A stretch of DNA of 64,000 nucleotides from Rebecca billardiae RCC1528 (GCA_965240325.2 OZ251246.1:1-64000), one strand, 5' to 3'. Shown: positions 14,101 through 64,000, numbered from the stretch's first letter. Notes: generated from the sequence alone by a model not told the origin. Made by a program: numbers and translations.

Positions 14101-16761
14101 CAGAGCAGCGAGCCCGGCCCCGTCGCCGCCGCGTACTTGCGCAGCAGCAGCAGGTCCGCCGCCCGCCCGCCCTCCACCGCCTCGAGCCAGCGGCCAAGCA
14201 ACGCCGCCTGCGCCGGCCCGGCCGCGCCCTTGAGCGCGTCGAGCGCGGCGGCGCGCTTCTGTTTGTCGAGCTCGGCCTTGCGCGGCTTGTCCTTGCGCGC
14301 CTCGGCGAGCTCGGGCTCGAAGCACGCCTTGAGCACCTCCTTCGGCGCGCGCGCGTCGCGCAGCGGGAACAGCGCCTCGAACAGCCGCGTGCGCGCCGCG
14401 CCGCTCGGGTCGGCGAGCGCGGACGCGGCGGCCTCGGCGGCGGCGTCGTCGTCCGCGCCGCCGCCGCCGCCCGCCGAGATTGCAATCTCGGCGGGGTTGG
14501 AGAGGTCGACGTACGGCGCGATCTCGCCCATCAGCCGGAACGCCGGCGCGCCCTTCGCCGCCGCCACCACGTCCTTGTTGTCGATCTCCGCCCAGTCCTC
14601 CGCCGAGAGCGACGAGCCGGTGTCGATCATCAGCTTGACGCCGCCCACGTGCGCGACCGCGGCGGCGGAAGCTTCGGCCGAAGCTTCGGGGCCGTCGGTG
14701 GCGGCGAGGGCGGTGCGCGCGTCGGACGCGGCCGCCTCGGAGGCGAGCAGCGCCGCCGCCGCCTCCGCCTCCGCCGCGTCCGCCGCCGCCACCGCCGCCG
14801 CCGCCTCGGCCGCCGCGCCGTCCGCGTCGTCCAGCGAGGCGGCGAGCGGCGGCGCGCGCGGCGGCACCGTCGCGGGCGCGAGCGCGGCGGGCTCGTGCGG
14901 CGGCGCGGAGAGGAGGAGCTCGCGGCAGAGCGCGAGGTCGTGCGCGCCGCGCGCCGACGCGAGGAGCAGCGCGTGCGCCGCCACCACGTCGCGCGCCACG
15001 CTCGCGTGCGCCGCGCCCGGCGCGAGCGCGTGCGCGCCCGCCGGGCCGACGCGCGCGCCGCCCGCGCCGAGCGCGGCGGCGAGCGCATCGTAGCACGCGG
15101 CGGCGTCGGCGCCGGGCGGCAGCGCGGCGAGCTCGGGCGCGAGCGCGAGCGCCGCGCCGTCGTACGGCGCCACCGCCACGCCCGGCGCGTCCACCTCCGG
15201 CGCGAACCAGCCGCCCGCCGCCGGCGCCGAGATTGCAATCTCGGCGGCGGCCGGCTCGGCGGCCGGCGGCGGCGCGGCGGCGCGCGCGCGCGCGGCGGCG
15301 AGGGCGGCGGCGTGCGCGGCGGGCGGCGCGTCGACCATGCAGCGCAGCGCGCCGGCGCTCCCGTCCCACTCGTACACCGGCAGCGGCCCCGCCAGCTCGC
15401 CGCCGCCCGCCGCCGAGCCGTGCGCGCCGAGCGCGGCGCGCGGCGGGTCGGCGCGCAGCGCGGCCGCGTACGCTGCGCCGCGCGCGCCGCGCAGCACGCG
15501 CGCGGCGTGCGCGCCGGCGGCGGCGGCGTCGGGCGCGGTGTCGCGCGCGTCGGCGACCGCCGCGTCGAGCGCGCCCGCGCCCGCCGCCGACGCGAAGCCC
15601 GACGCCACCGCGTCGAGCAGCGCGCGCGGGCACGCGCCGGCGGCGGCGGCGGCGGCGGCGGCGGCGGCCGCGGCGGGCAGCGGCGGCGGCGCGGCGGGCG
15701 GCGCGGCGGCCGCGGCGGCCGCGGCGGCGGCGAGCACGCCGATCGCGCCGCGCAGCGCGCCGAGCTCCTTCTCGCCCACCTCCGACGGCGGCACGCGCAG
15801 CGTCCCTTCGAAGAAGGCGCGCGGCGGCACGGCGGGCGCGCCGCCCAGCCCGGCCTCGGAGAGCCACTGACCTGCGGCGAGCGCGGGCGAGCGCACGGCG
15901 GGCGGGCGCGGCGCGCCGCGCGGGCGGCCGCCGCCGTAGAGCGCGGCGACGGCGTAGCGCAGCTCGGGGCCCACCGCGCCGCGCGCGTGCGGGCACCACC
16001 GCCGGCGCAGCGCGCCCCAGCACGCCGCCCCCTGCCACACGTGCAGCGTCGCGCCGCCCGTGCAAGCCGCCACGTCCGACACCGTCGCGAGCCGCTCGGC
16101 GCCGAGGACGATGTACTCGGCGGAGGCGGAGAGGATGGCGAAGACGGGCGCGCTGCTGCGCGTCGCCTCGTGGTACGCGAGCAGCTCTGCGCGCGCGCGG
16201 CGGCGCGCGCGGCGGCGCGTGAGCGCGCGCGCGCGCGCAAGCGCGAGCGCGCGCGCGCGAGGGGCAAGCTGGGCGCGAGATTGCAATCTGGGCGCGGCGG
16301 CGCGCACCGGGCAGGTGGGCGAGGCCCGAGCCGGCGACGGTGGTGGGCCCGGCGGCGGGGGCGCGCCACTCCACGCCGAGCTCGGCGCACACCGCCGCGA
16401 GCGCCGCGTGCCCCGCCACCGCCTCGTCCTCCTCCGCGCCGTCGCGCGCGGCGCTCGCGGCGAGCCGCGCGCGCGCCTCGGCCGGCGCGGCGGCGCCGCC
16501 GGCGAAGACGACGAGCTCGAGGCCGGTGTCGCGCAGCGCGCGGAAGAAGTCGAGCAGCTCGAGGTACAGCACCCGCGCCGCCGCGTGCCCGTGCGCCGAG
16601 CGCCCGCGCGCGGGCGCGCACCGCTCGGCGCAGTGCGCGATCACGGCAGGGCCGTCGACGAGCAGCGCGCGCGCGGCGCGCGAGCGCGCCTGGCCGCGGG
16701 TGAGCGTGACGATGGTGGGGCGGACGTCGCGCTGGAACGCGGTGAGCAGCGCCTGCGCCAT
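11167..16761 (-). CDS. DDX60/Ski2-like SF2 helicase with an N-terminal PIN-like region and a C-terminal W2 (eIF5C) domain; 7 exons
   Basis: Introns 16187-16307, 13681-13781, 13499-13590, 12889-12981, 12516-12611 and 11536-11623 (all GT-AG) join into one frame. Helicase motifs: LVLSTPTGSGKT (I), YTVPTKQ (Ia), LYLDEP (II), LASATL (III), QQFLGRLRRDG (VI). The N-terminus (LLVDGPAV..FFRALRDTGLELVVF) is PIN-like. The C-terminus (ILKRLYDADVLEEGAVVAWY..FVTWLQEAEEESD) is a typical W2 domain. Confidence 0.8.
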
Positions 16762-17025
16762 TCGCTCCGCGTGCGCGCCGCCGTGCGCCCTGGGTCGCGC
16801 TGCGCGCCGGGTGGGTGTGGTGTGCGGCGGGCGGCTTTTGGGGGCTGCTCCCGCGCGGGACGCGATGCGGCCGCGCGCCGCTTGGAGACGTGGCGGTCCG
16901 GGCGCGTGGCCCGCTCGTGAGTCCGGAACTCTTTCTTTCCTTTTGTCGCGCGGGCTTTTATTTCGATCCAATTCTGCTACTACTGCTGAATGATTAATGG
17001 CGGCTATTCATTTCTTGCTCTCGTA

Positions 17026-62300: not shown

Positions 62301-64000
62301 CGCGCCGCCGGCCGCGCCGCCGGCCGCGGCCGCGCCGCCGCCGCCGCCGCCGCCGCCGCCGCCGCCGCCGCCGCTCAGCGCGCCGCAGCGCGCGATGCCG
62401 TCGTCGTCGGCGCCGCCGTCGGACGCGGCGACGGCGACGCGGAGCAGCAGCTGCTCCAGCCGCGACGCCACCGCGTCCTCGTCCACCGCCACGCCCGAGT
62501 CAGCCGCGCGCCCGCCGCCGCCCGCCGCGCCGCCGCCCGCCGCGCCGCCGCCGCCGCCGCCGCCGCACGCGGCGGCGCAGCGGTCGGCGGCGACCTCGGT
62601 CAGAAGCAGTGACAGGTCGACGGCCGCGTGCGCCGCGCCCGCGCCCGCCACGCGCACGCCGCGCAGCTCGAGCCAGCCGCCCAGCGCGCACGCGTACGTG
62701 CGCACGCGCCGGGCCGAAAACGCCTGCAGCTGGCGCGCGCGCGCCGCGCCGGCCGACGCGCCGCCGCCGCCGCCGCCGCCGCCGTCCGCTCGCGCCGAGA
62801 TTGCAATCTCGGGCGCGCCCAGTAGCGCGAGCTGGTAGCCGAGGGAGAGGAGGCACTCGGGGTGCGCCGCGCGCAGGCGCTGCGCCGCCGACGCGCCGCC
62901 GAGCACCGCCGAGCTGCCGCCGAGCCCGCCGCCGACGCTCGGCGCGCCGCCGCGCGCGAGCGCAGGCGGCGCGCCGCCGCCGCCGCCGCCGCCGCCGCCG
63001 CCGCCGGGCTCGGCGGCGGCGAGGCCGAGCTGCACGCTGAGCCGCGCGTGCGTGCGCCGCGTCACCTCGAGCGCCAGCCGCACGCGCTCCTGCGCCGCGT
63101 GCGCGCGCTGCCGCGCCGACTCGCCGCCGCCATCACCGCCGCCGCCGCCGCCGCCGCCGCCGCCGCCGCCGCCCGGCGGCGGCGGCGGCGGCGGCGGCTG
63201 CTGCGCGCCGCCGCGCGCGTGCACGGCGGCGCAGAGCAGAAGCAGTTCGTACGCGGCGGTGCGCGCGGCCTCGTCGTCGTCGAACCCGCGCGGCGAGAGC
63301 GCCGCGCGCGGCGCCTCCCACCGCGCGCCGCCGCCGCCGCCGCCGGCCGCGCCGCCGGCGCGCGCGCGCGCCGCGCGCCGCGCCGCCGAGATTGCAATCT
63401 CGGCGGCGTCCGCGTCGTCAGGCTCGTCCAGTAGCTCGGCGCCGCTGTCGGCGGCGGCGGCGCGCGGCGGCGTGCCGGCCGTCGGCGGCGTGCCCGCGCC
63501 CTCAGCGCGACCGCCGCCGTCCGCGCGCGCAGGCCGCGCGCCGCGCGGCGGCGAGCCGCGCGCCGCGCCCGCCGCGCCGGCCGCCGCGCCGCCGCGCGCC
63601 GCCGCCGCCGCCGAGATTGCAATCTCGCCGCCGCCCGCCGCGTCGTCGTCGTCGTCGTCGGTCGAGAGCTGCGAGAACGAGACGGTGGGCGCGACGTCGG
63701 GCGCCGCCGGCGCGCCGCGCGCCGCCGCCGCCGCCGCGCGCGCCGCGAGCGAGATCGCGCGCTCCACGTCCACGCGCTCGAGATCGCGATCTGGCACGAC
63801 CCGCCGCCCCGAGATTGCGCCGAGATCGAGGCCGCTCGGCAGGCTGTCGGCGGGCCGGCCGAGGAGGGCGGCGAGCTCGGCGCGCGGCAGCGCGCTCAGC
63901 GTGTGCCGCAGCAGCTCGGCGCGCTCGCGCCGCGCCGCACCGTCCGCACCGTCGCCGCCGTCCGCGCGCGCCGCGCCGCTGCCCCCGCCGCCACCCCCGC
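59312..64000 (-). CDS. Munc13/PATROL1-like (DUF810, MHD1/MHD2) vesicle-tethering protein; 5' end lies outside the window; introns 60939-61169 and 59818-59920
   Basis: Motifs resembling plant unc-13 homologues: FDDDEAARTAAYELLLLC, RRSLELETW, SASALDLM, LEALCVRLNNAAFVLEQ, LLQAVDGCVHA and LREDVAALRAFFVADGAGLPAADV. Confidence 0.8.

Follow-up and report, generated by a model that had tools for sequence, protein, structure and literature searches.

An AT-rich palindrome iterated within genes of the GC-rich haptophyte Rebecca billardiae: a candidate signature of insertions linked to introner-like intron gain

Why should a 14-bp palindrome with eight A/T positions (GAGATTGCAATCTC) occur again and again, almost unchanged, within the genes of DNA with a G+C content of 75%? 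This question is raised by a 64-kb stretch of Rebecca billardiae RCC1528 (OZ251246.1:1-64000; referred to below as the window), the sole part of this genome that was examined. The analysis presented here suggests, with a probability that we put at roughly 55%, that the motif marks insertions which form a young family confined to this lineage and are linked to introner-like intron gain.

The window contains 15 exact copies of GAGATTGCAATCTC, against 0.00 expected from 100 dinucleotide shuffles of its sequence. Allowing up to two mismatches raised this number to 23 (0.02 expected), and every additional copy (8) differs from the palindrome by a single base. These values confirm the first-pass annotation of this DNA, which had reported about 23 copies, far above chance, between positions 14476 (start of the first copy) and 63626 (end of the last). 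In 6 of the 8 variants the sole differing base is that at position 1 or 14, and the conserved core was therefore defined as the 12-mer AGATTGCAATCT, present in 21 exact copies. The core is usually clamped by 2-4 G/C pairs, which creates a perfect palindrome of 18-22 bp. Its extension to an 18-mer (CC-core-GG) is found in exact form seven times; the 22-mer extension, previously described as frequent, does exist, but only in three exact copies. Among dispersed AT-containing repeats of this kind GAGATTGCAATCTC is unique in the window, whose remaining frequent k-mers are those of a 22-bp satellite and of (AT)n.

Genic segments were called with a codon-position model, which delimited 11 gene regions; the assignment of MPP-beta, gene B and gene K was additionally backed by homologue mapping. 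All 23 copies lie within the 35.4 kb of genic DNA and none within the 28.6 kb of intergenic DNA. Twelve are located in spliceosomal introns, while 11 are exonic and in-frame (Table 1), the latter being distributed among genes B (2 copies), C (1, a variant), D (1), G (4) and K (3). Exonic copies are read in two frames, as EIAIS (8 copies) or as RDCNL/RDGNL (3 copies), and the third frame is not used. All 11 are situated in Ala/Gly/Asp-rich low-complexity linkers, typically between GCC-type and GGC-type repeats. Codon periodicity continues unbroken, in the same phase, on both sides of these copies, and no GT...AG pair or branch box was found around them. The G+C content at third codon positions (GC3) of the coding regions of the window is approx. 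0.97-1.00; despite a gene GC3 of about 98-100%, the codons ATT and GCA are retained in all eight EIAIS copies.

On several points this picture agrees with the first-pass annotation, namely that about half of the copies are exonic, that two frames are used, that these copies employ otherwise rare A/T-ending codons and that the motif lacks a stop codon in any frame. Its view that the motif is maintained at the level of the nucleic acid, and not for the encoded peptide, also holds: the use of two reading frames and the presence of identical copies in introns led us to reject selection for the peptide. The claimed confinement to gene bodies is true of the 23 copies as such, but it was overstated, because the composition of GC-only targets accounts for much of it. 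The density of GC-only 8-mers is 3.4 times higher in genic than in intergenic DNA, and 81% of them are genic. Under a simple GC-target model, the location of all 17 independent loci in genic DNA has a probability of approx. 0.03 (0.806^17). Gene confinement in this 64-kb sample, which would be too small to show it for the whole genome, is largely explained by the availability of such targets.

What the first-pass annotation did not mention is that intronic copies lie close behind the 5′ splice site and that the introns concerned are missing from relatives. In six introns the first copy is placed 8-22 nt past the GT of a GTGCGCGC 5′ splice site, an arrangement with a probability of approx. 1e-5 under uniform placement. 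The (GC)n tracts located deeper inside the same introns never carry the motif (the distance from the GT is at most 22 nt for 6/6 first copies). Every intron identified here, with or without the motif, starts with GTGCG(C/T)G and continues with a (GC)n tract. Within the introns of region 8800-64000, a branch-like CT(C/G)ACGCG box occurs nine times on the sense strand and never on the antisense strand, about 35-70 nt before a CAG. The sequence GTGCGCG is also located 27 nt upstream of copy 51861, deep in MPP-beta intron I1, and the next exon opens with GTG after three (H2, I2 and I5) of the eight introns whose 3′ junction is readable. The intron status of the MPP-beta stretches is indicated by P0002, a transcript-contig protein of the closest relative (locus L131): its residues 13-482 are collinear with six exons, and every motif-bearing stretch of this gene falls between them.

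Two of the MPP-beta introns have further peculiarities. Intron I2 (52142-52318), whose position is common to two relatives, contains inverted telomere-like arrays, (GGGGTA)n at its 5′ side and (TACCCC)n/C-rich sequence at its 3′ side. In I5, five CTGAC motifs in a row (53798-53846; a GGCTGACTGAC-type repeat) form a tandem branch-site-like sequence.

Several of the introns were compared with the corresponding sites of related genomes. The MPP-beta exon shows 72-82% identity to its counterparts (74% in the case of Diacronema lutheri KAG8459747.1), i.e. the nearest relatives compared are no closer than about 82% in a conserved protein. Partial synteny is observed with D. lutheri contig JAGTXO010000038.1 (L129) and involves gene F, MPP-beta, a WW/FF-domain gene located near MPP-beta in both genomes, and gene K; between the synteny anchors the window contains approx. 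20-40 kb of extra genes and repeats. The window therefore derives from a species that is related to D. lutheri but distinct from it. Introns I3, I4 and I5 are missing in the MPP-beta genes of all four relatives analysed, i.e. D. lutheri, the Diacronema-like genome L127, another GC-rich relative (L132) and L138, with which at most the positions of I1 and I2 are shared. The spliced junctions of I4 and I5 reproduce the cDNA of the relative base for base, and these introns therefore appear to be pure additions of 205 and 468 nt, whose predicted splicing would restore an uninterrupted coding sequence. I5 begins with GTGCG, as does the following exon, and the relative has ATG followed by GTGCGC at this site, which suggests that the repeated GTGCG is a duplicated target supplying the 5′ splice site. 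The intron of gene B is missing in L139 (GCA_026770615.1), where residues 1-278 of P0035 are encoded without interruption. Thus, all three of the 5′-proximal motif introns that could be tested (I4, I5 and that of gene B) are absent from relatives, as is characteristic of recent gain.

The palindrome itself is equally lineage-specific. No copy with up to two mismatches, nor any other iterated AT-containing palindrome, was detected in the sampled loci of relatives, which comprise 21.8 kb of D. lutheri (75.6% GC), 6.4 kb, 3.8 kb and others (including L127/L128 and L132-L138), as well as approx. 14 kb of non-N sequence of L139. At the density observed in the window, the D. lutheri segment would hold roughly eight copies. 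For one exonic copy (62797, gene K) the orthologous site could be aligned, since conserved blocks (GYQLALL and ARARQL) bracket it in both genomes. The codons are GAG CTC GTC GCG GCG (ELVAA) in D. lutheri and GAG ATT GCA ATC TCG in the window; only 6 of the 14 bases of the motif are identical and the segment in the window is longer by seven residues. Copy 14476 of gene B lies within an insertion of approx. 20-37 aa, located after a conserved I-x-P-W/Y motif and missing in 7/7 aligned homologues. A word-based protein search identified P0001 (36% identity) as the closest homologue that matches gene B over its full length; the search with the whole exon yielded one distant match because low-complexity words swamped the candidate list. 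An analogous search with the ANF-receptor exon (gene H) gave no match, and a presumed single-exon protein of the window had no exact counterpart on record; the species itself is thus not represented in the protein collections. P0001 is encoded by contigs L125/L126 (JGI metagenomes 3300033745 and 3300042523), which represent a eukaryotic genome that is compact, has a G+C content of 73% and is apparently poor in introns; the motif is absent from them.

All-against-all BLAST comparison of the copies with 150-nt flanks revealed that most pairs have only the core plus 5-10 nt in common, while some share longer modules. Copies 40485 (gene G) and 62797 (gene K) are 98% identical over 56 nt, encoding APEIAISARA(D/E)GGGGGGG. 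Copies 46940 (intron H1) and 53073 (intron I4) are 100% identical over 34 nt: the 34 nt ending at copy 46940 correspond to the 5′ end of I4, and the 5′ 36 nt of I4, including the tract starting at its GT, form part of H1. A dimer (motif, approx. 20 nt, motif) is present in H1 and I5, i.e. in two genes, and tandem arrays have units of 21, 33 and 34 bp. Decay is nearly absent: no copies with two mismatches were found in the window, and a single transition-decayed variant (63780) was identified. This, together with the retained ATT and GCA codons, indicates that the copies are either very young or actively maintained.

With respect to secondary structure, the hairpin predicted at copy 41001 has a free energy of -41.2 kcal/mol (z -8.2). 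Palindromy of the flanks results mostly from the shared GC clamp, the exceptions being copies 41001, 63388 and 14476. The idea of a variable, covarying stem was abandoned, as copy-specific complementarity of the flanks only slightly exceeds that of cross-paired ones. No Rfam family matched the window. Putative resemblances of the motif to known sequences concern the U1A loop (AUUGCAC), the AGAUUAGCA stretch of U6 and GARP AGATT half-sites.

Table 1. Copies of the palindrome, introns that carry them, and other features referred to in the text. Single numbers denote the start of a copy; distances after GT are measured from the 5′ splice site.
Feature	Coordinates	Strand	Characteristics
Gene B (helicase-like), exonic copy	14476..14489	minus	exact; EIAIS; flanks CGCC/GGCG
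Gene B, exonic copy	15229..15242	minus	exact; EIAIS; between (GCC)n and (GGC)n
Gene B, intron	16187..16307	minus	121 nt; GTGCGCGC to GCGCAG; copy 17 nt after GT
Gene B, intronic copy	16277..16290	minus	one terminal mismatch
Gene C (AI-2E transporter), intron	17892..17995	minus	104 nt; copy 15 nt after GT
Gene C, intronic copy	17967..17980	minus	exact
Gene C, exonic variant	19257..19270		one internal mismatch (T to G, gene orientation); RDGNL
Gene D, exonic copy	26465..26478	minus	exact; RDCNL
Gene G, two exonic copies	40485..40519 (starts 40485, 40506)		exact; 21-bp tandem; both EIAIS
Gene G, exonic copy	41001..41014		exact; EIAIS; centre of perfect palindrome with 20-nt arms (~40 nt)
Gene G, exonic copy	41144..41157		terminal mismatch; RDCNL
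Gene H (ANF-receptor family), intron H1	46898..47068	+	171 nt
H1, copies	46906, 46940	+	34 bp apart (8 and 42 nt after GT); last base G in each
Gene H, intron H2	47616..47738	+	123 nt; exact copy 47624, 8 nt after GT
MPP-beta, intron I1	51477..52023	+	~547 nt; position common to relatives
I1, copies	51752, 51861	+	exact, terminal mismatch; 275 and 384 nt after GT
MPP-beta, intron I4	53051..53255	+	~205 nt; copy 53073, 22 nt after GT
MPP-beta, intron I5	53459..53926	+	468 nt; starts GTGCG, as does next exon
I5, copies	53471, 53504, 53537, 53694	+	first three in 33-bp tandem; 12, 45, 78 and 235 nt after GT
Gene K, exonic copy	62797..62810	minus	exact; EIAIS
Gene K, exonic copy	63388..63401	minus	exact; EIAIS
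Gene K, exonic copy	63613..63626	minus	exact; EIAIS; between (GGC)n tracts
Transition-decayed relative of motif	63780..63793		GAGATCGCGATCTG; only one in window
Synteny segments with D. lutheri L129	27867-30066, 31879-33652, 50979-54238, 59346-64000
GAGAT..ATCTC clusters, contig L066	178-326, 1044-1136
GAGAT..ATCTC clusters, contig L021	884-915, 1378-1409
GAGAT..ATCTC cluster, contig L101	43-71
GAGAT..ATCTC cluster, contig L068	536-565
GAGAT..ATCTC cluster, contig L087	1817-1844
GAGAT..ATCTC cluster, contig L010	7332-7380

According to the explanation that we favour, the palindrome would mark short insertions that are interspersed in the nuclear DNA of this haptophyte, which is of the Pavlovales type. 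The insertions would have spread at the DNA level as a pre-formed module, and not via point mutation, by (i) transposition of a miniature palindromic element or (ii) ectopic copying between GC-only tracts. Since the tested introns carrying a 5′-proximal motif are missing in relatives, the module may be part of, or travel with, recently inserted introner-like introns. Copies would persist only where they are harmless, i.e. selection would leave those that are spliced, typically 8-22 nt downstream of a GTGCGCGC 5′ splice site, and those that form in-frame EIAIS or RDCNL pieces in disordered GGC/GCC-rich linkers. The mobility of the motif and the enzyme behind it are both putative, as is any use of its hairpin or dimer-site property by the element or by the host. 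Among the options put forward in the first-pass annotation (a site for a dimeric protein, a conversion target or a micro-mobile element), the last fits best, while HIP1-like conversion found no support. The more specific proposal that a hitherto undescribed class of ultra-short (18-22 bp) palindromic mobile DNA marks or seeds new spliceosomal introns and also colonises exons in-frame, in a eukaryotic nucleus, is only tentative and rather doubtful. In this case the hairpin might participate in propagation, for instance through hairpin-primed insertion, through palindromic loops that escape mismatch repair or through a transposase acting on abutted ends.

Several observations weigh against this explanation. 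Introns devoid of the motif share the same GTGCGCGC...CTCACGCGC...CAG architecture, and the palindrome could therefore be a later add-on. The motif introns are alike only over 24-56 nt around the core, and not end to end: the similarity does not extend to both intron boundaries, and the 3′ parts share generic signals only. By the operational definition published for introner families (PMC9860276), they therefore do not qualify as one. Moreover, I3 is lineage-specific yet motif-free, whereas I1, which is shared with relatives, contains two deep copies. No target-site duplication was detected, direct repeats in the flanks of a given copy being about as common as in cross-paired flanks at all offsets and lengths. 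The window has no separated AGATTG/CAATCT half-sites that would mark a full-length element, a Pfam scan of the ORFs in its intergenic blocks revealed no transposase, and an element of 18-22 bp would be smaller than any established transposable unit. The alignment of gene K with D. lutheri may also be read as a replacement without insertion. Finally, the evidence comes from the sequence of 64 kb of this genome, from which the removal of the introns is predicted.

The main alternative, compatible with some of the same data, is a stand-alone micro-insertion which prefers GC-only, often self-complementary targets (GCGC/GCGC, CGCC/GGCG) and whose link with new introns is coincidental. Proximity to the 5′ splice site would then arise only because every intron starts with GTGCGCGC(GC)n. 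The equal architecture of introns with and without the motif, the copies located deep in introns or in exons lacking splice signals, the palindromic GC clamp common to the flanks and the greater density of GC-only targets in genes are all in keeping with this idea. It is less easily reconciled with the deeper (GC)n tracts, which were never hit, with the absence from relatives of all three tested introns with a 5′-proximal copy, or with the identity between the 5′ 36 nt of I4 and part of H1, which includes the tract from the GT; we consider it possible, if rather doubtful. It is unlikely, although it could coexist with a micro-insertion as well as with the favoured intron-gain explanation, that the motif is a cis element selected by the host. 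Such an element would be either the site of a putative dimeric DNA-binding protein recognizing two inverted AGATT half-sites or, at the level of pre-mRNA, a GAGAU-UGCA-AUCUC hairpin recognized by a putative RNA-binding factor or nuclease. Selection would explain the uniformity of the copies, which have undergone almost no decay despite extreme GC pressure, and stable transcript hairpins with a UGCA loop are predicted. The idea is slightly favoured by the paired 14-mers in the promoter of a Strawberry-notch gene on an unrelated picoeukaryote contig (158 bp apart, in three metagenomes) and by clustered GAGAT..ATCTC variants in other marine contigs, both described below. Tandem arrays and up to four copies per intron are, however, atypical of a regulatory site, and the hairpins at the 5′ ends of introns are no more stable than those of shuffled sequences (z -1.1, +0.1 and -1.5). 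The motif is missing at the orthologous genes of D. lutheri and other relatives, and no conserved function is therefore indicated. We know of no protein that binds this palindrome.

The analogy with HIP1 drawn in the first-pass annotation implies that copies are generated in situ from near-matches, by point mutation combined with biased mismatch repair or a methylation-linked process. A highly over-represented palindrome that occurs in coding DNA in more than one frame, and is free of stop codons in all frames, does invite this comparison. However, DNA of 75% GC offers practically no near-matches to a 14-mer with eight A/T positions (0.02 expected with up to two mismatches), and no two-mismatch sites exist in the window. 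Alignment of orthologues, the check proposed for a gain by point mutation, gave unrelated D. lutheri codons at the one alignable exonic site (62797; 6/14 bases). The shared modules of 34-56 nt and the whole new introns point to insertion, and copies are absent from the 28.6 kb of intergenic DNA and from relatives; this origin is highly improbable. Marginally less credible still is the possibility that the exonic copies are tiny non-canonical hairpin introns, removed by a non-spliceosomal route (cf. Amoebophrya and euglenids). In Amoebophrya, introners have inverted repeats that join the exon ends (PMC7789003). Several exonic copies indeed form perfect hairpins of 18-40 nt, and units that are multiples of three would keep the frame whether removed or not. 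At most exonic copies, however, the palindrome is extended by only 1-6 nt, codon periodicity runs through the flanks, and the introns of the window are as a rule of the canonical GT-AG type, with strong signals. An assembly, adapter or chimera artefact, in favour of which there is only the general suspicion attached to palindromes, was rejected as next to impossible in view of the precise placement of the copies (in-frame in exons, at fixed offsets in GT-AG introns) and their varied flanks. To our knowledge, the motif matches no adapter sequence.

The features of the palindrome were compared with those of known systems. Cyanobacterial HIP1 (GCGATCGC) is an 8-bp, GC-rich palindrome, distributed genome-wide in genomes of moderate GC content and thought to arise by substitution combined with selection or repair. 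The strong over-representation of a single short palindrome, present within coding sequences in several frames, is common to both. Unlike HIP1, the motif described here comprises 14 bp and is AT-rich in DNA of 75% GC, its copies appear to be gained as insertions or replacements, it is missing in relatives and none was seen between genes (28.6 kb of one window). Miniature inverted-repeat transposable elements (MITEs), remnants consisting of solo terminal inverted repeats and excision footprints offer another parallel, as a perfect palindrome is, trivially, a pair of abutted inverted termini; they also resemble the motif in that their copies are numerous, almost identical and grouped into subfamilies by the flanks they share. 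The differences are the lack of a target-site duplication, a size far below that of MITEs and the lack, in the window, of a full-length AGATTG...CAATCT partner. The GC clusters of yeast mitochondria and the palindromes of Volvox organelles are short palindromic repeats of organelle genomes. Like the motif, they form hairpins, have a composition opposite to that of their host and invade introns and sometimes coding regions; they are organellar, whereas the motif is nuclear and associated with spliceosomal introns.

A closer resemblance in coding DNA is provided by the Rickettsia palindromic elements (RPEs), reportedly described by Ogata et al. in 2000 as in-frame palindromic selfish repeats. 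In both cases a palindrome inserted in-frame within coding genes adds a short peptide to tolerant regions of unrelated ORFs (here 11 copies in five genes). RPEs differ in being 100-150 bp long, bacterial (from obligate intracellular species) and unconnected with introns, whereas the present unit measures 18-22 bp (at most about 56 bp) and belongs to the nucleus of a eukaryote with spliceosomal introns. Small mobile repeats located in-frame within genes are among those treated for bacteria in PMC2759123. As for introns, the organisms named as carriers of introners by Gozashti et al. (2022, PMC9860276; see also Huff et al. 2016, cited therein) include Micromonas, Aureococcus, dinoflagellates, fungi and many aquatic protists, and in some families the 5′ splice site is supplied by a duplicated target (PMC9860276). 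The case described here is similar in that a marine alga has a repeated sequence in introns that are specific to its lineage and spliced canonically, with a preference for genes, in that insertion would leave the mRNA unchanged (as predicted for I4 and I5) and in that the GTGCG on both sides of I5 may represent a duplicated target providing the 5′ splice site. It is dissimilar in that the introns resemble each other only in their 5′ 24-56 nt, and not at both ends, that there is no consistent target-site duplication or pair of terminal inverted repeats, and that the unit is a single 12-14 bp palindrome whose signature is also found as unspliced in-frame pieces of exons. As far as the literature was searched, no nuclear genome has been described in which a single palindrome of 12-14 bp marks new introns as well as in-frame insertions in exons. 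A full-text search with the 14-mer gave no match, the core is absent from the supplements of the introner survey, which have no Pavlovales entries, and the papers searched contain nothing relevant on palindromes of Pavlovales and no report of introners in this group.

Searches for the motif in unrelated DNA gave mostly chance matches. The scan of IMG/VR produced five single matches at chance level, and a metagenome scan at least 119 stretches; among the matches listed, most are due to chance (e.g. human gut contigs), and neither blastn nor tblastx showed a relationship of any of them to the window. Some of the stretches are marine contigs, which were chosen by the motif itself and are likewise unrelated to the window. 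In one of them, a picoeukaryote-like contig (L113, 7422-7593), the 14-mer occurs twice, 158 bp apart, upstream of a gene encoding a Strawberry-notch helicase; this arrangement is conserved in three metagenomes (also L078, 2214-2385, and L018, 217-388). Other marine contigs contain clusters of GAGAT(2-4 nt)ATCTC beside the exact motif, with conserved arms and a variable centre (Table 1).

The window also contains several repeats of other types. The 22-bp satellite (unit TGGAGGACTCGCTGGCGCATCC; approx. 45 copies, 95% identity) occupies an intergenic block at 24706-25698, and two tandem arrays have longer periods, of 212 bp (1154-2482; 6.3 copies) and 211 bp (21501-22488; 4.6 copies). A perfect (AT)47 microsatellite (20778-20871) lies inside a short AT-rich island (GC down to approx. 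0.33-0.45) in DNA of otherwise 70-85% GC, and a 165-bp unit is perfectly duplicated in tandem between MPP-beta and the next gene (56478-56807).

If the motif is indeed mobile, it would be a compact and easily recognisable tag of very recent intron gain in a haptophyte, whose genome is among the most GC-rich of eukaryotes. Selfish repeats inserted in-frame would also have an equivalent in the nucleus of a eukaryote, where they would extend disordered linkers by peptides such as EIAIS. Two questions, the origin of new introns and the growth of low-complexity protein segments, would thereby be joined in one element and, if the more specific proposal of an ultra-short mobile DNA is true, intron gain and the growth of protein linkers would be two outcomes of one process. 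For practical purposes, gene predictors may use the motif as a cue for intron starts in genomes of this kind, and annotators who meet EIAIS and RDCNL peptides repeatedly should expect scars of insertions rather than domains.

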